From the sequence record NC_041994.1: a stretch of DNA of 64,000 nt. The stretch is one strand, 5' to 3'. The notes under the pieces were generated by a model that was not told the origin of the DNA, searched no databases, and was given only the letters and a program-made list of their open reading frames with translations. Positions 4,140-19,651 of this stretch are shown in pieces; within the stretch, counting starts at the first letter, position 1; every line of letters starts with the position of its first letter. The position numbers and the translations under genes are program-made.

Positions 4140-4184
4140 GATGCTCTCTTTATTAAAGCAGGGGTCCCGAAGGACCCCCACGGA

Positions 4185-7100
4185 TTACGCCGTAGCGCCG
4201 ACCGAGCCGACCCACTGAGTGCCGTCCCAGAACAGGATGACCACAGTGAATGTAGCACCCAAGGTTGGAGCAGCACCGCCACTCCACACGATACCCGCAG
4301 GCCAGGTGATCTGAGCGGCGTTACCCGCTACCTTAACCACCACAGTCATGGCTGCACCAGCACCCGGAGCGTTCGAGAACGTCAGAGTACGAGCCACAGC
4401 TGCCGATACCGTGAAGACTTGCTGAACCGCGAGGTCCAGTGCCGCCGTAGCAGCTACTACCTTCAGGGTGTAACGATCGAACGTGTTGAGGACCCACGCA
4501 CCATCCTTACGGACGTACTGCTTACCGTCGGTTGGAGCATCGGCTGCGATTGGGAAGACGATCTCTGCCCATGCGCCGTCTTTACGACCGCGCAGCTTGC
4601 CGTCCTTCGGTGCCTCACCAACAGCCACCACGAGCTCAGCCCAGGCGTTATTGATGCGGATGTATGGCTTACCATCGGTAGGAGCCTCACCGACCGGCAG
4701 AACGCGCCACACGCCGTTGTAACGGGTGTAGTCCTTATCGTCCTGTGGTGCATCGTAGACGTTACCACCACCCAGGTAGCCCAAAGGCGCCCACAGTACT
4801 TCGGTCGTCTTCTTGAAGAACTGAAGCGACGCACTGTTCAGGTAGTAGTCGTTACGACGACCGTCGGCAGGTTGCGGATCACGTGGCAGTACTACCCACA
4901 GTGTACCGATATCGCCCTTGTCACCTTTATCGCCTTTGAGGCCGGTGCCGGTGTCACCCTTATCGCCTTTGTCACCCTTGTCCCCTTTCGGGCCTTGGAT
5001 AACGCCGAGGTCTTCGTAGGCAGTGCCCGTCCAACCCCAGAAGTTCAAGCCGATGATGTAACCCTGACCGGTGGTGCCGGTGCCTGGGAGTTCAGACGGA
5101 TCGTTCTTCTTGCCGAGGATGGTGATGCCTGGACCCATCGGACCATCAGCACCGATCGGACCACGGACATTGCCCATGAACACGAAGTCGGTACCGTTGT
5201 GGCTGTAGATGTCGCCAGTGCCCACGATGTAGGTATCACCTACGACTGGGTTAACGAGATCGGCCAGATCGGCTTGGGTGTCGAGGTAGCCTTTCGGATT
5301 GAAAGCCGCACCGGTATCGCCTTTGTCACCCTGATCACCTTTATCGCCTTTCAGCGACGCGATGAAGCTAGGCAGGTCGACGATCGAAGGATCGTTTTCC
5401 TTGGCGAGTTCCAACGCCGATTTACCGTCCGGACCCATTGGGCCAGTCAGGTCACCTGCGTCGTACCAGATGCTGCCGTTCCACACGTGCATGTTGTTCT
5501 TAACACCATCAGGGATGATGTAAGCATCAGCCACCAGTTGCCCGGTGATTGCAGCCAGTGCAGTCAGATCCGCCAACTCACCTTTTACAGTGAGGCTACG
5601 GCCATCGGTACCGTTGAGTGTGGCCAGCCATTGAGCCGGGGTGCCCGAGAAGCCGTCATCGACAGCAACGTCGTAGGCCGACTTACCTGGATCACCTTGG
5701 TCGCCCTTGATGGAGTCGCCGTTATCACCCTTGTCGCCTTTATCCCCTTTGTCACCCTTGTTACCTTTGAGGGTAGCGAGCCACTCAGGGATAGTGCCGA
5801 CGAAGCCTTCGTCCACAGCCAGCGCGTAAGCAGACTTACCGTCCTGACCTACGAACTCACCCAGATCGTTCCACTGTGCGTTGAACCAGCTGTACAGACG
5901 TGTGCCCACGACGTAGCTGTCGTAGTCGGTGCCCGAAGCAGGCAGGTCGCCTACTGCGTTCACCATGCCAACGACTTTCAGGCCTGCGCCTTGCTCGCCT
6001 TTGTCACCTTTCAGACCACGGTCACCCTGCAACCCTTTCAGGCTGGCGATGAACTGTGCTTCCGAACCCGAACCACCCAGCTGTTGCCAGAGCTCGTACG
6101 CCGACATACCGGTATCGCCCTTGAGCGATTCGAGCCATGCGGTACGGGTACCGACGAAGCCGTCAGCCACAGCGACCATGTAAGCGTCATCGCCGTCGTC
6201 GCCTTTGTCACCGACATCGCCTTTGTCGCCCTTATCACCTTTCAGACCCTGAGGGCCAACGATGTTACCAGCGTTGAACCACTCGGTGCCTTCCCAGACG
6301 TGGAGGTTGGTACCGATCAGGTAACCGTCAGCGATAGCCGCATCACCCGGCAACGAAGCTTCATCAGCCACGGAGCCACGCAGAACAACAACAGCAGCCG
6401 AGTCACCACGGTCACCTTTATCGCCCTTCTCACCAGTGAGACCGACATCACCCTTCAGGCCTTTGATCGAAGCAACCCACTGGGTACGGTTACCCTGGAA
6501 GCCTTCGTCAACAGCGATCTGATAGGCGTCCTTACCTTTCAGGCTTGCCAGCCATTGAGTGGTGGTGCCGTTGAAACCGAACTGCACTGCGATCTGGTAA
6601 GCGGACTTACCGTCTGGACCGACCTGACCCACAGGGGCCCAAGTAACGGTGTCCCACACCCACATCACGTTCTGGATGATGTACGTGTCGCCCGACAAGT
6701 TGTCTTCCATTGGCAGGAAGTCGGTGGATGGGAAGCTACCCAAAATGCGCAGACCGATACCGTCCAGACCTTTAGGGCCGGAAACGTCACCACCGTCTAC
6801 CCAGGTACCTTCAACCACAACCCAGATGTGCTTGTCGATGAAGTACGCATCGCCGTTAGGCAGTGCCGCAGGAGGAGGCAGATCGTCGGTGGTGTTCAGC
6901 TGACCTTTGACGTTGAGGATACCCACACCGCCATTGTCACCACGATCGCCCTTATCCCCCTTGTCACCTTTATCGCCCTTGAGCGAGGCGAGGTAGTCGA
7001 TCAGAGAACCACTGAAGCCATTCTCTTGAGCAAGTTCGTAAGCGTTCTTGCCGTCGTCGCCGTCGGTGCCTTTGAGGCCAGCCGCTTCAGCGTCAACGAA

Positions 7101-12401: not shown

Positions 12402-13291
12402 CAGCTCAACCAGGTGGTCCCGTTGAGGCTGTTAGCGCCCAGCAGTGGTTCGGTGTTACCCACGTCGAAGGCCAGGGTTGCGCCAGTGCTGGAGTAACCG
12501 ATGGCGTGGTGAGTCGAGATGATCACGTTCAGCTGACCGGCGATCACTTCGTTGAACATGAAGTTACCAGCACCGCCGGACGATGCTTGCACCTGACGAT
12601 CCACACCAGACATGAAGCCCAGTTCAGAGATCACTGGCGAACGGGACGAACCGGTACGCACGCGGTGAGCATTGATCATCTCAGCGATCTGGTTCTCAGA
12701 CAGACGTACAGTGATGATGGCCGAAGCCGACACACTGGAGTCACTGCCGAGCACCACACCGGAGTTGGAGATCTGTGGTGGCACAGGGTTCAGGTTTTCA
12801 GCGTTCGGGGTGAATGGTGTTACCACCACTTCGCCTTCCACAACCTGGATGTTCTGAAGCGCTACGGTGACGTTGGTGTAATCCAGACGCAAGCCGTAGT
12901 AGGCGATCTTGTTGATGCCGTTGTGCGGTTCGATACGGCGCAGGCAGTAGTTCTTGCGAATGTCTGCCGGCAGGTCATCGTCGAGGTCACGCAACGCGAT
13001 TGGGATCAGGCCGTAGAGACCGGCGTCTTCTGCATCGTGAGGAACCGGAATGATCTCGTCCGAACCGTCAGCTGCCACAGTAGTAGCATGGCCGCGGTTA
13101 CCGAAGACCAAGTATTTCATCTTCGGCAGTTCACCAACAGCAGGAGCCACCAGCGCCTGAATACTGAGGCGTTCGTTGAGCGTGGTGTTGGGTAGCAGGG
13201 TGAACGGCAGGCCGAGCTTCAAGCACGTCTGCAAGTAAGCACCGTAGACCGTTCGGCATACGTGGATAATCTGATTGTCTACAGCAGACAT
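12401..13291 (-). CDS. Virion structural / baseplate protein (phiKZ gp139-like)
   Basis: Start MSAVDNQ with GAGGAGAGGA RBS; GNRGH, RR.E..NG..KIAYYG.RL, SPVISELG..SGVD motifs recalled from jumbo-phage homologues. Confidence 0.7.
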   Translation of the reverse strand: MSAVDNQIIHVCRTVYGAYLQTCLKLGLPFTLLPNTTLNERLSIQALVAPAVGELPKMKYLVFGNRGHATTVAADGSDEIIPVPHDAEDAGLYGLIPIALRDLDDDLPADIRKNYCLRRIEPHNGINKIAYYGLRLDYTNVTVALQNIQVVEGEVVVTPFTPNAENLNPVPPQISNSGVVLGSDSSVSASAIITVRLSENQIAEMINAHRVRTGSSRSPVISELGFMSGVDRQVQASSGGAGNFMFNEVIAGQLNVIISTHHAIGYSSTGATLAFDVGNTEPLLGANSLNGTTWLS

Positions 13292-13348: not shown

Positions 13349-13383
13349 CATAAAGCCCTCCCCGTCGGGAGGGCGATATGTCG
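13349..13383 (-). terminator. Hairpin element after the dioxygenase pair
   Basis: CATAAA-GCCCTCCC-CGTC-GGGAGGGC-GATATG. Confidence 0.7.
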
Positions 13384-13884
13384 TTAGGCGTAGTCAGCAG
13401 GGTTGCCCAGCACCATCGTGTTGGCCCATACCGCTTCGTTTCTGGAACGTTTGACTTCGTGCACCACACTGATGCGGAAGGCAATACCTTCACCGGCTTG
13501 CAGAATGACCTGCTTGTCGTTGAGCCAGATAGACTGGCCGTCGAACAGGGCGTATGCAACGATCACCGCTGCTCGCTCGCCTTGATCGGCCCAGGTGTCC
13601 ATGACATCGAGGAAACCGCTGCTGGCAGGGAAACCAATGAAGTACCCCACCAGCCCACGCTTGACGTGGTCACGGTTACCAAACAGGTCTTTGAACAGCT
13701 TGCGTTGCTTGGCCGTCCAGCGGAACCAACGCGTGTCGCAGTAGTGGCTGATCACCTTACCGATGTTCATCCCCATGCGCACCCGATGGGACTTAGCCAC
13801 CGGCGGGTTGATCTCACGGTAGAGGTCAACCAATTTACCCACAGCCTCGGCTTCGAGTTTGGGCATGTTAACGTAGTCGGACAT
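13384..13884 (-). CDS. Degenerate 2OG-Fe(II)/cupin-like (DSBH) protein
   Basis: GYFIGFPASSGFLDVMDTW...AGEGIAFRISVVHEV parallels the adjacent dioxygenase but lacks the HxD His and the 2OG-binding Arg. Confidence 0.55.
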   Translation of the reverse strand: MSDYVNMPKLEAEAVGKLVDLYREINPPVAKSHRVRMGMNIGKVISHYCDTRWFRWTAKQRKLFKDLFGNRDHVKRGLVGYFIGFPASSGFLDVMDTWADQGERAAVIVAYALFDGQSIWLNDKQVILQAGEGIAFRISVVHEVKRSRNEAVWANTMVLGNPADYA

Positions 13885-13894
13885 GCTAGCTCCG

Positions 13895-14377
13895 TTATTC
13901 GTAAAGGAAGATGGCTACGTAACGCAAGGACTTAACCGGCGGTACCGAGTGCGGGACACTGCATTCGCTGAAGCAGATACCGTGACCGAGAATGTCGGGC
14001 ATGAACACCCCTTCAACCTCGATCCCATCACCGTCCTCACACAAAGCCACTACAAGGTTCTTGCGGTAGCTTTGCTGGTCGATGTGTTCAGGCATGAACT
14101 CACCGGGACGGTAACGGTTGATGATTGCTTCACCTAACCAGTGTCGGTCGTACTTGGGGGCCAAGGAGCGCAACAGTTGGTTGAACTCCTTAGGCTGCTG
14201 ACGGTCTCCGAGGAAACCGTAATCAGCAGCTGTGCCTTGCGTGGTGGGCAGACTATTGATTTTGTGGCGCTGTACCCAACGGGCTTCATGCATCTCAGCC
14301 AGTTGGCGTTTCAGTTCGTCACAGACCTCTTTAGAAAACTGTACCACCGGTAATTGATTTAGCCCCGTAGACTTCAT
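13895..14377 (-). CDS. 2OG-Fe(II) dioxygenase
   Basis: INRYRPGEFMPEHID ... PHSVPPVKSLRY: HxD...H triad plus Arg nine residues after the distal His. Start at 14377 is a best guess (GAGG upstream). Confidence 0.8.
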   Translation of the reverse strand: MKSTGLNQLPVVQFSKEVCDELKRQLAEMHEARWVQRHKINSLPTTQGTAADYGFLGDRQQPKEFNQLLRSLAPKYDRHWLGEAIINRYRPGEFMPEHIDQQSYRKNLVVALCEDGDGIEVEGVFMPDILGHGICFSECSVPHSVPPVKSLRYVAIFLYE

Positions 14378-14924
14378 GCAGACCGCCCTCAAGTTGATCG
14401 GCCATCGATTGCTCTTCCTGAGCGATGGTGACGTAGGTGTAACCTTCGGCCGTGGCGTAGTACGCCTTACGTTCGTTGTTAGCATCCTTCACTTCGGTGA
14501 TGTACAGGTTCATCTCTTCGAGCTTTTCCAGTACTGCTTCCAGCGCAGGATCAGGCTTCTTGAGCATGCCGCGCACCACACGACCGAGTTCGGTGATTGC
14601 ATTGCCGACGTTGTTGACTTGGTTGATCACCGGGTACGCTTTAGTGATCTTCTGTTGGGCGGCCAGATCCAACTGACGCTCGTACAACACAGCGCCAGCC
14701 GCCGACTTGTTACGGATCTCGTAGTCAGGGTAATTACCCACGACTTCTTGTTCGTTGTAGTCGAAGCTCTCGACATCCACGTAGACGTAGTAGTCGTTGT
14801 TCAGGGTCTGCGGGTCAACCCAACCCAACACGGCCGTGAGGGCCCCGGAGATCTTGTTGAACTGCAAGAGCACTCGGCTGGCGTTAGGCAGGTTAACCAG
14901 CGCTTCAGAGATGGTAGTGGTCAT
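14331..14924 (-). CDS. Hypothetical protein following the tail fibre genes
   Basis: 197 aa, no recognisable catalytic motif; co-oriented, 15 bp downstream of the last fibre gene. Confidence 0.65.
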   Translation of the reverse strand: MTTTISEALVNLPNASRVLLQFNKISGALTAVLGWVDPQTLNNDYYVYVDVESFDYNEQEVVGNYPDYEIRNKSAAGAVLYERQLDLAAQQKITKAYPVINQVNNVGNAITELGRVVRGMLKKPDPALEAVLEKLEEMNLYITEVKDANNERKAYYATAEGYTYVTIAQEEQSMADQLEGGLHEVYGAKSITGGTVF

Positions 14925-14939
14925 TACGGATTCCTTGGG

Positions 14940-16286
14940 TTAAACGAGCCAGGTGGTCCAGCCACCGGCAACACGGATGAGGAACTTCACTTCAGGCAGG
15001 TTCCATGTGGTGTGAGCCACAGCCGCACGGTAGCCCATGAACACAGCCTTGGTACCCACTGGGTAGCTGGTCAGGTCAGCGAAGTTGGCATTGAGGTAGT
15101 TGATGGCGTTCTGTGCGTTGTAGGCTGCCACGGTCGAACGTACATACAGGACTGCTGTCTTGTTAGTTTGTGCGTTGATCTCTTGGATCATCGACAGCCA
15201 GTTACGCCAAGTGCCGTTACCCATCAGTGCCATAGAAGGACTACCGCCAGCACCACCCAGCAGTTCGTTGGTGAACAACCCAGAGACGACGTAGTCACCA
15301 CTGAGGTTGGCCATCACATACGCTTTCCAGCCGGCCAGGCTATAGCCGTAGAGCAGGTTGGAGTTCGCCGCCGGTGAGTCTTTGTGCAAACGTGCGTTGA
15401 TGCGGGTGGTGATCTCACCGGTCGTGTAGGCCGAAACGTCTTGCGCACGAATGCCGTGTGGGTTATCACGACGGGCCACGTGAGCATTGAGTGGTTCAAC
15501 CAATTGACGGGTGGTCGCCAACTGCCCGGTCTCAGGTGTGGCGTAGTAGACATCCAGCGTGGACTGGTAAGCTTCACTCGCCAGCGTCATCCGCCAGTTG
15601 TTCAGGTTCGACAGACCCACCTTCGTTTTGTTTTCAGCGTGAGGGTTGTTGAAGTCCTCAACGTGAGATTTGAACAACGCCTGTTCCTGCGCCAGCCGTG
15701 CTGCGGCCAATGCATGGTAGTTGTTGGCGTAGTCCTTCAGCTCCTGAACGATCGCCTCGTCATTACGACCCAGCAAGTCACGAACACGGTTGAGCACAGT
15801 CACGGTGGTTTCAGCACCATACAACTGCCAGTACTCGTCCATGTGTGGTGCCGGGTTAAACCCTTTAGGCTTGTTGATGATGTCTTCGTAGTTGACACGG
15901 AAGTTGTCTGGGTTGATCGCATCGAGCAACGCACGCAGCTCTTCAACGTTTACCCCGTAGTTGCCACCCACGGCGTGGTAGTTCAGCACCAGGCTGTTAC
16001 TCACGTCCGTGTTCGTGATCACGATGAAGGCGTACACCGGCTTAGCCGCCAGCATCCCCAGATCACGATACAGATACGTGGTGGTGTAGTCGACACCGTG
16101 CACCAGACGACGACCACCGTCAAAGATGCGCAGGTTCTCGTCGTTATAGAAAGCCCCGTGGCGAGGCAGCAGTACCCGGTGCGGTTGGTTATCCACACGG
16201 ATCAATGTCCGTGCTTCATTCGCGATCCGGTTACTGAGCTTAGTGCCCTTGAGGTCCAAGGGCAGCATGGTAATAGCGGGCATCAT
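14940..16286 (-). CDS. Tail fibre/baseplate protein, phiKZ gp131-135 paralogue family
   Basis: N-terminal LPLDLKG..SNRIANE; HxxxxxNPH..K..VGL repeats; shared C-terminal YPVGT motif. Confidence 0.8.
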   Translation of the reverse strand: MMPAITMLPLDLKGTKLSNRIANEARTLIRVDNQPHRVLLPRHGAFYNDENLRIFDGGRRLVHGVDYTTTYLYRDLGMLAAKPVYAFIVITNTDVSNSLVLNYHAVGGNYGVNVEELRALLDAINPDNFRVNYEDIINKPKGFNPAPHMDEYWQLYGAETTVTVLNRVRDLLGRNDEAIVQELKDYANNYHALAAARLAQEQALFKSHVEDFNNPHAENKTKVGLSNLNNWRMTLASEAYQSTLDVYYATPETGQLATTRQLVEPLNAHVARRDNPHGIRAQDVSAYTTGEITTRINARLHKDSPAANSNLLYGYSLAGWKAYVMANLSGDYVVSGLFTNELLGGAGGSPSMALMGNGTWRNWLSMIQEINAQTNKTAVLYVRSTVAAYNAQNAINYLNANFADLTSYPVGTKAVFMGYRAAVAHTTWNLPEVKFLIRVAGGWTTWLV

Positions 16287-16294
16287 CCTGCTCC

Positions 16295-18184
16295 TTAGAG
16301 TGCTTGCCAGTTGACGGTGTCGACTTTAACCCAGCATTGCATCCGCCAGGCGTCCCGTGCTTCAGTGGCATTACCGTAGTCCCATGACCCGCCGTAGTAG
16401 GTCATGACCAGTGCGAGCGTACCGCTTGGGTAGTTCCCAATGTCGCTGTATGTAGCTGCCAGTGTGGCCGCGATGTTGGTGCCGTTGGCGCCCTGCAAGT
16501 ACACGATCTTCGTACCCTTACGGGCGTACGTGTTGATAATGGACTTGATGTTCAGGAGCATGTTGTTGCCCACGACGATCTGTTCGGCGTTGGCTTGTGC
16601 GCCCGCAGTGCTTTCATCACCAATGAACTTCGACCCGATGAAGCCAGCGATCAGGTCGCTCACGATGGTGGTGTCGCGAATACCCGAACCGGCGTTGAAG
16701 ACCCACGCCTTCACTTGGCCTGCGGAGTTCACCACACGCACTTCACGAACGTAGGACGAATAGCTACCGATACCGTCGTTCTCGATCGCAAGGTTCCACT
16801 TGCTCAGCGTACGACCAGCGACCGCAGACAGGTCGATGTTACGGGTGTACCATTTACGCCCTGCCATGAATGGGATCTCTGGTGCTGCCGGGTGCTGGGC
16901 AAAACCATTCTGGTCAACCAAGCTTGGCACAAAGCGCAAAGCATCGGCCATGTTGTTCGGACCCCACTGAGCATCCAAACCAGAGAGCACGCCCGCATCC
17001 ACGTAGATGTCGTAAATCAGTCGATCACCCGGAGCGATGTTGACCGCCGTGTAGGAGATCGGTTCGTACATGTACGAGTTGCCACCAGGTGGAATCGAAA
17101 CGCAGGAACCATTCAACTTGGCACAGAAGCCACCCGGCCATGCCGACGCTACGATGCGACGCATGTTCACGATACCCTGGGTGATCAAGCCACCATTGAG
17201 GTTCGTGCGGGTGTAGTTGTAGAGGTTGTTCCAGTCGTAGCCTTGCAGCTTATAAGTGCTGACGGCTTTGGCAGTTTTGTCCAGACGGGTACCGAGGGCT
17301 ACCTCAGCTTCGTCAATGGTCAAGGTACCGGCTTGGGCTGCCGTTACGCCATGTGGGTTGTTGGTGTTACCAATGTGTTCGTTCATATCCGCAAGAACGT
17401 TCACATCCAGCATTCGTTTGAAGCGCTGTACGGTCAGGTAACGCGATGGCGAGTTGAAACCTTTGGTCGCGGCTTCAGCGTCAGTCACCACGCCAAAGTT
17501 CTGGACGTCCGACAGACCCACTTGTGTCTTGGTAACCCGGTGTGGGTTCTTCGCCAACAAGTGTTCAGCCAGTTGTTGCATCAACAGGTCCATGCCGTCG
17601 TCGAGTACGTCCATCTTGGCATCGTACTCACTCTGGATCTGGAGATAGGTACGAGCCGAAACAGCCAGCTTGGCGATGGTGATACGGTCGATGGATTCAC
17701 AGAACCCTTCAAAGCCGTAGAGCTCCCACATGGCATGCAGGTGACCACCGACTTCAAACTCATCGGGCTTACCGTCGATATTGCGCCACGTTGGATTACG
17801 TGTTGGGTTGAGCAGGCCTGCGGCCATGTCAGCGATGGCTGGTGTTACGTCGCAGTACTTACCACCCACCATCGAGGCATTGATGAAGACCTCCTGCGTC
17901 ACGCGCGGGTTGGTGATTACAATCACCGCCGCCGCCTCGTAACCGGTATCTACCGTCGCCGCTGCCGAGATAGCCACGCATTGGAAGTCTTCGTCCTGCG
18001 TGAGCTCGAAACCGGCAGAGTCGGAGATCTCCAAATGTTCGGTGTAGAAGAAGCCGTTATTCAGCACCAAGGTCCGGTAAGTCAAACCGGCTTGGCGACT
18101 GAGGTCGTGGTACTCACGGAGTACCCGGTTGCGCGGCAGTAACCGTGTAGAGTCAAACGGCAGCGCATAAATGACAGGAGTCAT
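16295..18184 (-). CDS. Tail fibre/baseplate protein, gp131-135 family, with an inserted jelly-roll/CBM-like domain
   Basis: Start MTPVIYALPFD; NPHRVTKTQVGL and NPHGVTAAQ repeats; about 150-aa insert absent from the neighbouring paralogues. Confidence 0.8.
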   Translation of the reverse strand: MTPVIYALPFDSTRLLPRNRVLREYHDLSRQAGLTYRTLVLNNGFFYTEHLEISDSAGFELTQDEDFQCVAISAAATVDTGYEAAAVIVITNPRVTQEVFINASMVGGKYCDVTPAIADMAAGLLNPTRNPTWRNIDGKPDEFEVGGHLHAMWELYGFEGFCESIDRITIAKLAVSARTYLQIQSEYDAKMDVLDDGMDLLMQQLAEHLLAKNPHRVTKTQVGLSDVQNFGVVTDAEAATKGFNSPSRYLTVQRFKRMLDVNVLADMNEHIGNTNNPHGVTAAQAGTLTIDEAEVALGTRLDKTAKAVSTYKLQGYDWNNLYNYTRTNLNGGLITQGIVNMRRIVASAWPGGFCAKLNGSCVSIPPGGNSYMYEPISYTAVNIAPGDRLIYDIYVDAGVLSGLDAQWGPNNMADALRFVPSLVDQNGFAQHPAAPEIPFMAGRKWYTRNIDLSAVAGRTLSKWNLAIENDGIGSYSSYVREVRVVNSAGQVKAWVFNAGSGIRDTTIVSDLIAGFIGSKFIGDESTAGAQANAEQIVVGNNMLLNIKSIINTYARKGTKIVYLQGANGTNIAATLAATYSDIGNYPSGTLALVMTYYGGSWDYGNATEARDAWRMQCWVKVDTVNWQAL

Positions 18185-18195
18185 GGAAATACCTT

Positions 18196-19575
18196 TTAGC
18201 CGAGGACGAACCAACCACCGCCACTACGGAAAGCAGCGCGGAACGGACTGAATGCGTGAGGGTCCCAACCACCGTTACCGTAGGAGTGGGTTTCCACGAT
18301 GTTCACCTGGAAGATGACAACCGTACCCACCGGGTACGCATTGATGTCCTGAAAGGTCGCAGAGATGTTCTGAATCGCGGTGTTTTGGTTACCTTGGTTA
18401 CCCGCCCAATAAAGGTCGGTACCACCCGCAGCGGTATAGCGATCAAACAACGAACGGAACTCAGCCCACACACCCGTACCCAACAGCACCGAGGTTGGCG
18501 TTGGGTTACCGATACCCATACGCGCTGGGTTAACCTGACCGACTGTGAACGACGAAGCGTCCAGCTCAGTACGCAGCTCGTTATAGAGCTGGATCTGGTT
18601 CATGTTACGGATAGGTGTTGGTTGAGCGCGTGTAGCACCCATAAAGCCCAAGGCGTCCACCGCCGTTCCATCGATCGGCAACTTCGTGTCGGCACGAGCG
18701 TCGAACTGTGTCTTGGTGTACGTCTTAAGCTGTGCCGCCGTAGGGGAGTGTGTGGTGTAACGTGCGTTGAGGTGCGCGTTCAGTGGAATCTCACCGAACT
18801 GGTTGATCATGCCGTACACCCCACTCTGCGTGAGGTAATGCACAGCACTGGTACCAGCTCGCGCCGTGGCGTCATCCGCCGTGGCATAGTTTTCCACCAA
18901 CGGGAGGAGGATGTCGGCTTTATCGACATTGTGCGGATTGGTCTGGTCGTTGATGTGAGTCAAGACCTGACCTTGGAAGCGCGCCATGAAGTTGTTGAAG
19001 CGCGTCTTGATGTCCAATCGGACTTCGTCTTCTACTTCACCGTTACCTGAGGTGATAGCCGCTGTGAGGCGTTCAATGGACGCATTGAGGTTACCGTAGT
19101 GGTGACGCTCCCAACGTTCCTCCTGAAGCTCTCCAGGCTGCCACTGAGGCTCATCACCGATGTACGCGGCCCATCCTGGCTTAACGCCGTTGGCCAAGGT
19201 ACCGAGATAGGCAATAGTGTCGTCTTCTACCGTCAGGCTGAACGCGAAGTCAGCACCCACCAGTTGGCCACCCAGCAGCACAAAGTCTGCAACAGCGGCA
19301 TTGAGGATCACCACCGCACTACAGATCTCCATGCCGGTGTAGGCACTGGCGTCAGCGTGCTTGTAGGTAGCGATGTAGTCGATGTCCTTGCGGAGCATCT
19401 TGTACGTCTTGTCATAAACTTTGAGACTCGGGGAGTAGAAACCACCCTGAGAGAACGAAACAACTCGGTATGGCGTGTTACCGCGCGATAGCAGCAGCTG
19501 TTTCTCCCCCGCGACCAAGTTGGTCGGGCTGCGACCCGTCAGGTCCAACGGGTACTTGGAGATTAGACTGGGCAT
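18196..19575 (-). CDS. Tail fibre/baseplate protein, gp131-135 family
   Basis: Start MPSLISKYPLDLTGRSPTNLVAGE; NPHNVDK repeat; C-terminal YPVGT. Confidence 0.8.
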   Translation of the reverse strand: MPSLISKYPLDLTGRSPTNLVAGEKQLLLSRGNTPYRVVSFSQGGFYSPSLKVYDKTYKMLRKDIDYIATYKHADASAYTGMEICSAVVILNAAVADFVLLGGQLVGADFAFSLTVEDDTIAYLGTLANGVKPGWAAYIGDEPQWQPGELQEERWERHHYGNLNASIERLTAAITSGNGEVEDEVRLDIKTRFNNFMARFQGQVLTHINDQTNPHNVDKADILLPLVENYATADDATARAGTSAVHYLTQSGVYGMINQFGEIPLNAHLNARYTTHSPTAAQLKTYTKTQFDARADTKLPIDGTAVDALGFMGATRAQPTPIRNMNQIQLYNELRTELDASSFTVGQVNPARMGIGNPTPTSVLLGTGVWAEFRSLFDRYTAAGGTDLYWAGNQGNQNTAIQNISATFQDINAYPVGTVVIFQVNIVETHSYGNGGWDPHAFSPFRAAFRSGGGWFVLG

Positions 19576-19651
19576 CTTGGACTCCGCTGATAATCGAAAA
19601 TAAAGAGAGTAGACATGGCGCCAAAGCAACCATGTCTACTCTGGCTAAGGC

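Follow-up and report, generated by a model that had tools for sequence, protein, structure and literature searches.

Genes gp149, gp148 and gp147 of Pseudomonas phage Noxifer (NC_041994), which stand directly behind tail-fibre genes and are here called the trio, resemble several described systems in part. Among the closest are the 2-oxoglutarate (2OG) oxygenases of the prolyl 4-hydroxylase (P4H), PHD and PKHD type (PF13640; 3dkq, 5c5t, the Pseudomonas P4H 4iw3 and PHD2), with which gp148 shares the double-stranded beta-helix (DSBH), the His-x-Asp...His motif and an Arg nine residues after the distal His. It differs from these enzymes in having only 160 amino acids, in lacking a peptide-binding or other extra domain, and in being encoded together with an apparently dead paralogue and a helical partner. 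The oxygenase domain of LH3 (6fxr, 6tex) was the second-best match to the predicted gp148 fold (E 4e-6, 20% identity), and LH3 and mimivirus L230 provide a precedent, in a virus as well, for the hydroxylation of a fibrous structural protein. Unlike LH3, gp148 carries no glycosyltransferase domain, and LH3 was not found by sequence profile. L230 had been named in a preliminary description of this DNA; the PDB and BFVD fold searches returned no hit of that name and found human LH3 and PBCV-1 vCPH instead. Unlike these three collagen hydroxylases (LH3, vCPH and L230), the trio is found without collagen-like genes in Pseudomonas phage Milchi and other lineages. The tail-fibre chaperones (P2 gene G, Tfa of lambda and Mu; PF02413) occupy the same slot as the trio, 3' of the fibre gene and, in a P2-like prophage, before the sheath gene, but they have no sequence relationship to it and are single proteins, whereas the trio comprises three, one of them an apparently intact oxidizing enzyme. 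Prolyl hydroxylases of the Tpa1, Ofd1 and OGFOD1 type carry an active and an inactive DSBH in tandem. A comparable pairing of a catalytic with a degenerate DSBH is seen in gp148 and gp147, except that the phage copies are separate polypeptides of adjacent genes and that Tpa1, Ofd1 and OGFOD1 were not among the top 50 fold matches. A conceptual analogy, and only that, is offered by the P3H1-CRTAP-cyclophilin B complex, which, as one account describes it (PMC3900401), consists of one active 2OG hydroxylase and non-catalytic helpers, three proteins in all, and both modifies and helps to fold a trimeric fibrous protein; that complex is eukaryotic and located in the endoplasmic reticulum, whereas for the trio a complex is only proposed. 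Lastly, for some bacterial operons in which 2OG hydroxylases are encoded with tail-collar-type or collagen-like proteins, the latter were predicted by Iyer et al. (2010) to be the enzymes' substrates (PMC2938197), but those operons are cellular, combine beta-hydroxylase and PhyH-family enzymes with sulfotransferases, represent a different family, lack the trio and are not phage fibre modules. The main new result described here is that the ordered trio is a mobile cassette that travels with fibre genes in several unrelated phage lineages.

The window, by which we mean the whole stretch of 64,000 nucleotides analysed, matches the 278-kb genome of Noxifer, a phage of P. fluorescens SBW25, at 100% identity, and a coordinate in the record is the window coordinate plus 124000 (Table 1). 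All genes of the trio and its fibre neighbourhood are on the minus strand. In phage phiKZ the orthologues of gp149, gp148 and gp147 are gp136, gp137 and gp138, in unchanged order, and the trio is found, in phiKZ numbering, after the paralogues gp131 to gp135 and before gp139 (DUF7208) and the RuvC-like gp140. The homologues of gp131 to gp135 upstream of the trio in Noxifer are gp150 to gp154, again with the order kept. The preliminary description, made without database searches, had placed an unknown protein of 197 amino acids, an intact-looking dioxygenase and a degenerate paralogue directly downstream of gp131-135-like fibre genes, co-oriented with them, overlapping or nearly abutting, and closed by one hairpin. 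This layout was confirmed. The unknown protein is gp149, and when read from the sequence, a 15-nt gap separates gp150 from gp149, gp149 and gp148 overlap by 47 nt as annotated, a 10-nt gap separates gp148 from gp147, and a stem-loop follows. With 8 to 31 full-length homologues each, at 37-99% identity, the three are true genes, not chance open reading frames (ORFs).

Both ends of this gene group are marked by a hairpin. The one that closes it has a folding energy of -22.5 kcal/mol (z -5.7), the one between gp153 and gp152 has a folding energy of -25.3 kcal/mol (z -5.3), and in each case none of 200 shuffled sequences was equally stable. The counterpart of the latter in phiKZ is a hairpin with a T-run after gp132, and a transcription start with a middle-promoter motif has been mapped at PHIKZ133 (PMC8244752). 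The two hairpins, the abutting or overlapping genes, the same arrangement in phiKZ and the start at PHIKZ133 together make it likely that gp152-gp151-gp150-gp149-gp148-gp147 is a single transcription unit of three fibre paralogues and the trio. The terminator-like hairpin between gp153 and gp152 (gp132 and gp133 in phiKZ) is conserved, being present at 19606-19642 (-) in the window and at 4180-4225 in locus L002. It divides the five fibre paralogues into two transcription units, and the second unit alone holds the trio and the proteins with the shared C-terminal module described below.

The trio was then compared across approximately 35 loci, of which 21 form a phiKZ-like set (phiKZ and 20 IMG/VR loci). 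In this set the order gp149-like, gp148-like, gp147-like was invariant, the trio was always directly behind gp133-135-type paralogues, and it stayed with these genes in the three loci (L008, L020 and L021) in which gp139 and RuvC have moved. Pseudomonas phage Milchi, a 175-kb T4-like phage with rIIA/B, a gp32-type single-stranded DNA-binding protein and a T4-type baseplate and neck, has the trio in this order too, between a 181-residue "tail collar fiber protein" and a gp13-type neck gene. The P2-like prophage L028, carried in a bacterial chromosome (CP099567.1), has it between an H-type tail-fibre gene (PF12571) and the sheath gene, which is the slot of P2 gene G, and further sites were a contig with a V-W-J-I baseplate block, a position behind a Collar-domain fibre, and a 121-kb contig. 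A fibre gene immediately precedes the trio at all 21 phiKZ-like loci, and likewise in Milchi, the P2-like prophage, L026, L030, L031 and L034. The fibre link, now extended to phiKZ-like phages, a T4-like phage, a P2-like prophage and other myoviruses, is therefore much stronger than the preliminary description could tell, and among the roles it had offered, that of a fibre maturation complex is the best reading. Among cultured phages, the oxygenase was found by tblastn in 72 records, Pseudomonas phages only, and one scan of genome contigs for prophage copies found none. Three control loci, from Ralstonia phage RP31, Xanthomonas phage RTH11 and Serratia phage Moabite, contained the fibre-base gene and neither the trio nor the C-terminal module. 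In RTH11, a related jumbo phage (L036, 11468-12076), a "tail assembly chaperone" is annotated between the gp131-like fibre genes and RuvC, the slot taken by the trio elsewhere. On two viral contigs of about 231 kb, two intact oxygenase genes flank the gp147-like gene (L020, 8826-10513; L021, 8826-10498); this gp147-like gene has an insertion of about 50 residues, and the gp139-like and RuvC genes of these contigs are upstream, not downstream, of the fibre genes.

The preliminary description had called gp148 an intact-looking dioxygenase with a signature of the prolyl/lysyl-hydroxylase type, and both the motifs and their conservation bear this out. The residues are found as Asn87-Arg-Tyr89, His98-Ile-Asp100, His143-Ser-Val-Pro-Pro-Val and Arg152-Tyr. 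Among 64 relatives, at identities down to 21%, the metal ligands His98, Asp100 and His143 were kept in 61, 62 and 62, Asn87 and Tyr89 in 61 and 60, and Arg152, which lies nine residues past His143 and would anchor 2OG, in all 64; Asp128 and Gly131 are likewise kept. The catalytic residues were invariant in 10 trio-linked family members of different lineages. The family is narrow: a search of 1.84 billion cluster representatives gave only 86 at E <= 0.001, almost all of them stand-alone proteins of 150-190 amino acids. This degree of conservation also bears on a reading in which the trio proteins are folding or trimerization chaperones, or transient scaffolds, for the fibre C-termini, with the oxygenase fold serving as a binding platform and no relevant chemistry taking place. 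Such a role would fit the position of the trio in the tail-fibre chaperone slot (in the P2-like prophage, and by comparison with RTH11), the fact that one of the two DSBH proteins is presumably already non-catalytic, and the lack of any report of trio proteins among virion proteins. The retention of the metal triad, the 2OG-anchoring Arg and the Asn/Tyr pair in 60 to 64 of 64 such distant relatives is however hard to explain without catalysis, and L020 and L021 even carry two intact oxygenase copies, so that we regard a purely chaperone role as unlikely.

An AlphaFold2 model of gp148 had a mean predicted local distance difference test (pLDDT) score of 92.3 and a predicted template-modelling (TM) score of 0.87, and showed the DSBH core: Foldseek aligned it with over 170 solved chains of 2OG oxygenases at E <= 0.001 and a probability of 1.00. 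The nearest PDB folds were the PKHD/PiuC-like 3dkq, LH3, PBCV-1 vCPH (5c5t), PolD, AspH, 6n1f, PHD2 and the Pseudomonas P4H that acts on EF-Tu, with E values from 2.5e-7 to 1e-4 and TM-scores from 0.55 to 0.69 for the best of them. When the predicted viral structures of BFVD were searched, the orthologues from phages Psa21 and PhiPA3 came first, followed by P4H-like oxygenases of cyanophages and giant viruses, with a single "alkylated DNA repair dioxygenase" at rank 47. By fold, gp148 thus groups with protein hydroxylases and not with the AlkB or TET enzymes, a clustering that would have spoken against the preliminary description; no AlkB or ALKBH chain was among the top 50 PDB fold matches. 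From its residues and its model we conclude that gp148 is probably a minimal, catalytically intact 2OG oxygenase, to which protein hydroxylases are closest in shape.

An enzyme of the AlkB kind, acting on nucleic acids in DNA or RNA repair or demethylation, would fit the existing "DNA endonuclease" name or an AlkB-like annotation, and was taken up and rejected as the principal reading. Sequence searches first gave ALKBH8, ALKBH5 and ALKBH2, but these matches cover the common cofactor-binding segment only and the fold searches did not support them. In the profile search of PDB sequences, ALKBH8, ALKBH6, ALKBH2 and AlkB were the best matches to the N-terminal half of gp148, where they align with the segment Asn-x-Tyr...His-x-Asp that such enzymes have in common, whereas the 2OG oxygenase 6n1f was the best match over the whole domain (E 3.6e-6). 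The AlkB-type family PF13532 weakly matched 36 of the 64 relatives, and in Noxifer gp148 it scored 19.4 bits against a cut-off of 31.2 and covered residues 59-110 only; TIGR00568 scored 12.7 bits against a cut-off of 231. PF13640 (2OG-FeII_Oxy_3) did better overall, with 38 of 64 relatives matched and a best E of 5.2e-12, although Noxifer gp148 itself, at 16.5 bits (E 0.017), is under the cut-off of 27. AlkB enzymes have a longer C-terminal segment after the Arg, whereas gp148 ends 8 residues past Arg152. Regarding genomic context, RuvC lies two genes downstream of gp148, but the cassette is found behind fibre genes in at least four unrelated genome architectures. The sole source of the name "DNA endonuclease" (RefSeq NC_041994; in phiKZ, NC_004629, PHIKZ137) is how phrog_2297 is labelled, and the searches gave no match to a nuclease family, motif or fold; in the GenBank record of phage Churi the orthologue of gp148 is named a 2OG-Fe(II) oxygenase. 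We conclude that the gp148 family stands alone, outside AlkB, and consider an AlkB-kind activity very improbable, in agreement with the low rank that had been given to DNA repair or base modification.

The third protein, gp147, has no recognizable BLAST similarity to gp148. When the two family profiles were aligned with hhalign, however, they matched with a probability of 90.5% (E 1.4e-6) over 134 colinear columns, and a hidden Markov model (HMM) of the gp148 family matched gp147-like proteins of other lineages at E values from 5e-7 to 4e-9. A model of gp147, built from a nine-sequence alignment and of moderate confidence (pLDDT 71), matched the folds of bacterial P4H, PHD2 and 3dkq. The distal His142 was invariant in 24 relatives, as were Asp93, Trp98 and Trp153, and the His-x-Asp pair and the Arg after His142 were absent from this invariant set. 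The profile alignment, the matches across families, the P4H-like model and the loss of His-x-Asp and Arg lead us to conclude that gp147 is a degenerate, presumably non-catalytic copy of gp148, as had been proposed at the outset. The first protein, gp149, is encoded ahead of the oxygenase in every trio locus. Its N-terminal part, judged by eye from the sequence, is rich in beta structure; the middle is helical, and conservation is strong in the C-terminal tail. It had no significant match in Pfam, NCBIfam or PDB sequences, and the tail-fibre chaperone family PF02413 (Caudo_TAP) matched one of 24 gp149 relatives, at E 0.13, and neither gp147 nor gp148.

The fibre proteins beside the trio have a C-terminal module in common. 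An HMM was built from the last 110 residues of the gp133-135-type paralogues, and the module was claimed only at E <= 2e-3. At all 21 phiKZ-like loci, two of which a search with full-length paralogues had missed, this HMM matched the ORF that immediately precedes the trio, and it also matched the ORFs upstream of the trio in L030 and L031. In Milchi it matched the collar-fibre protein (E 1.4e-7 within the locus), which was the sole match when all ORFs of that genome were searched (E 1.6e-6); pairwise BLAST of Milchi M193 gave marginal E values for the C-terminal stretch, 0.048 with gp152 and 6.9 with gp150, and a profile was needed. Extension of the module to the P2-like, Collar-type and L034 fibres was attempted with two rebuilt HMMs and rejected (best E 0.1); in these fibres (L026, L028 and L034) a Gly-Asn-Gly/Ser-like turn is visible by eye only. 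The most conserved positions among 53 module sequences, in gp152 numbering, were Pro415 (41), Gly417 (47), Asn434 (47), Gly435 (39) and Trp455 (50). Among cultured phages the C-terminal module was found in 54 records, all Pseudomonas phages, and the N-terminal fibre-base domain is widespread, occurring in 148 records that include phages of Erwinia, Serratia, Klebsiella, Ralstonia and Xanthomonas. In phiKZ the fibre base consists of three copies of gp131 and the N-termini of gp133, gp134 and gp135, and the distal parts of the fibres were left unseen by the 2026 structural atlas (PMC13250141). The gp151 protein is approximately 180 residues longer than gp150 and gp152, with the extra segment ahead of the C-terminal module, and this segment may be an added binding domain. 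In the fibre upstream of the trio in the P2-like prophage (L028, 5393-6370), a unit of about 17 residues that includes a His-x-His pair occurs four times in tandem. Motifs of this type bind metal ions in some trimeric fibre tips.

A GDK-rich collagen fibre had been noted 6 kb further on the same strand, and a collagen-like protein with G-X-Y repeats was indeed found there. If gp148 acted on these repeats as LH3, PBCV-1 vCPH or mimivirus L230 would, it would hydroxylate their Lys or Pro residues. LH3 and vCPH are among its best fold matches, and the Gly-Asp-Lys repeats have Lys at the Y position, which is the site used by lysyl hydroxylases. At 12 of the 21 phiKZ-like loci, a homologue of the collagen-like gene follows the trio at a distance of 3-7 kb. 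The pairing does not hold in other lineages, however. In the complete genome of Milchi (174,859 bp), which includes the trio, G-X-Y runs of at least five triplets are absent except for a Gly-rich stretch in a neck protein, and no such run was present at 13 other trio loci, in 7-20 kb of DNA per locus. The repeats also differ by phage, being GDK in Noxifer, GPE, GPQ and GKD in phiKZ, and GTN and GTD in the 201phi2-1 and PhiPA3 types, so that repeat residues are wholly different between phages whose oxygenases are 45-55% identical. In addition, the trio remains bound to the gp133-135-type genes even where its other neighbours have moved (L008, L020 and L021), whereas the collagen-like gene belongs to a separate gene block past the RuvC, spanin and endolysin genes, and, as mentioned, LH3 was not returned by the PDB sequence-profile search. 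Because a conserved enzyme and partner set is unlikely to go with such a variable and dispensable substrate, we rank collagen hydroxylation low and consider it improbable. The collagen-like protein could be an alternative or additional client of the trio, and is not its conserved partner. The earlier proposal that the phage modifies its own fibres, or that the trio is a fibre maturation complex, thus stands as far as the fibre linkage and the catalytic residues are concerned, and its collagen substrate, with Lys hydroxylation of a (GDK)n fibre, does not. Within the collagen-like family (homologues at L002, L004, L007, L010, L013-L017 and L022) the triplets vary by lineage, and the globular domains between them can be aligned.

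We estimate a probability of about 50% that the trio is a complex for fibre maturation, not part of the virion, by which the C-terminal module of the adjacent fibres is hydroxylated. The three genes would form a fibre accessory cassette that is co-transcribed with the fibre paralogues gp152, gp151 and gp150, the helper set being made from the same message. During or before fibre assembly, gp148 would hydroxylate a conserved side chain in the C-terminal module. As an inactive paralogue, gp147 would probably serve as a partner or substrate-holding subunit, and gp149 would be a helical adaptor that, with gp147, holds the client or couples the reaction to trimer assembly. The trio would act in the infected cell, with the helpers not remaining in the particle, and would fill the genomic slot that tail-fibre assembly chaperones have in other myoviruses. 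We infer the substrate and chemistry of the trio, the formation of a complex, the use of a protein instead of a small molecule (from fold neighbours and gene context), the identity of that protein and any effect on fibre assembly. Speculatively, the target could be one of the most conserved hydroxylatable residues of the module, such as Asn434 of gp152, in its Gly-Asn-Gly turn, or Pro415. PHIKZ136, PHIKZ137 and PHIKZ138 were detected in infected cells by size-exclusion chromatography and mass spectrometry (SEC-MS; source data of PMC10449902), with one, zero and one SEC peaks, respectively, and this detection demonstrates that the phiKZ proteins gp136 to gp138 are made. The phiKZ structural atlas (PMC13250141) identifies 40 constituent proteins, and its main text does not name these three.

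Several observations weigh against fibre maturation by hydroxylation. The absence of any SEC peak for PHIKZ137, compared with one each for PHIKZ136 and PHIKZ138, neither shows nor excludes a stable complex, and no hydroxylated residue has been observed in any result to date. The module is statistically undetectable in the fibres of L026, L028 and L034 (E 0.1 or worse), and Noxifer gp150 itself is without the Gly-Asn-Gly/Ser-like motif. The structural neighbours of gp148 include the small-molecule enzymes PolD and PiuC, and the TM-scores given above are moderate. Two distant oxygenase relatives (L024, 7001-7468; L025, 1543-2064) are found solo in non-structural neighbourhoods, without gp149- or gp147-like partners, which indicates that the oxygenase family is not tied to fibres by necessity. 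The phyletic pattern and the absences that rest on tblastn are limited by the sensitivity of single-sequence searches. Of the solo relatives, one lies between DNA-ligase and nicotinamide mononucleotide-adenylyltransferase/NAMPT-type genes and the other beside Asn-synthase-like, solute-binding-protein and endolysin (lysis) genes. These solo contexts, together with the EF-Tu-modifying Pseudomonas P4H, PiuC and PolD among the fold matches, would also suit a different target, namely a host protein such as a translation factor, another virion protein or a small molecule of late infection, with adjacency to fibre genes reflecting co-regulation only. Co-regulation alone fails to explain why the same trio accompanies fibres in jumbo, T4-like and P2-like genomes, and it leaves the common C-terminal module of the upstream fibres in most lineages unexplained; we consider a target of this sort unlikely.

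The literature searched contained no functional study of phiKZ gp136, gp137 or gp138, no biochemical data on 2OG-dependent oxidation by gp148 and no paper on the trio, and in phiKZ, the principal model of jumbo phages, these three genes have no assigned role. Neither a 2OG oxygenase nor accessory genes behind fibre genes are new in kind, and what appears to be undescribed is their combination in a conserved mobile trio, in which an apparently intact oxygenase and a pseudo-enzyme occupy the chaperone slot in jumbo, T4-like and P2-like phages. The cassette would point to oxidative post-translational modification of bacteriophage fibres, which none of the papers searched describes, and suggests that some phages chemically mature them. 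We propose tentatively, and with less assurance than for fibre maturation as such, that this is the first oxygen- and 2OG-dependent enzymatic system of tail-fibre maturation in phages, in which a mobile cassette of adaptor, hydroxylase and pseudo-hydroxylase replaces the classical chaperones and hydroxylates a conserved residue of a fibre-tip module. If this is true, maturation of the adsorption organelle would be tied to the host supply of oxygen, iron and 2-oxoglutarate, fibre assembly or receptor binding would depend on host oxygen, iron and the state of the tricarboxylic acid cycle, and both the fibre-tip module and this class of fibre accessory proteins would be new. Even without the chemistry, an annotation error is corrected and a three-gene fibre accessory cassette is defined.

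Table 1. Positions of the trio, its fibre neighbours and associated elements in the window
Feature	Coordinates	Strand	Remarks
Collagen-like, GDK-rich "tail fibre protein" (phiKZ gp146-type), 1013 aa	4185..7226	-	Seven G-X-Y runs of at least five triplets; 6.2 kb downstream of the trio
Stem-loop closing the unit	13355..13374	-	8-bp G+C stem, 4-nt loop, then UUU; 9 nt past the gp147 stop codon
gp147 (= phiKZ gp138), 166 aa	13384..13884	-	phrog_14616, E 4e-74; proposed non-catalytic partner subunit
gp148 (= phiKZ gp137), Fe(II)/2-oxoglutarate oxygenase, 160 aa	13895..14377	-	All catalytic residues; proposed protein hydroxylase
gp149 (= phiKZ gp136), 197 aa	14331..14924	-	phrog_13209, E 5e-69; 25 homologues; proposed adaptor or chaperone subunit
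gp150, fibre paralogue with C-terminal module	14940..16283	-	phrog_2163, E 3e-119; module HMM E 2e-24; directly upstream of the trio
gp151, fibre paralogue with C-terminal module	16295..18184	-	phrog_2163, E 2e-145; module HMM E 4e-26
gp152, fibre paralogue (phiKZ gp133-type) with C-terminal module	18196..19575	-	phrog_2163, E 1e-126; module HMM E 6e-33; candidate substrate or client
Stem-loop with U-rich tail, between gp153 and gp152	19606..19642	-	Likely 5' boundary of the transcription unit of the trio

The starts of two of the genes deserve comment. The mechanically called ORF of 196 amino acids at 13895-14485 is over-extended, and both the annotation and the homologues support the shorter gp148 of Table 1. 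In every phiKZ-like locus gp148 begins within the last codons of gp149. Where exactly gp148 begins is uncertain, since some orthologues are annotated as beginning about 11 codons later, and the overlap is accordingly 47 nt or about 14 nt. In the model, residues 1-5 of gp148 have pLDDT scores under 50, and the block mean for residues 1-10 is 47. The ATG of gp148 arises from conserved His-Glu codons in the C-terminal tail of gp149 (14331-14377, -), and for this reason the first residues of gp148 appear conserved. A programmed frameshift that would fuse gp149 to gp148 was considered and rejected; gp148 is always in the +1 frame, and no fitting slippery site was seen by inspection. Beyond the closing hairpin, the ORF of gp146 (DUF7208, phiKZ gp139-type) opens with an ATG at 13351, in contact with the hairpin's U-tract, and the RefSeq start lies 60 nt later, at 13291 (-).

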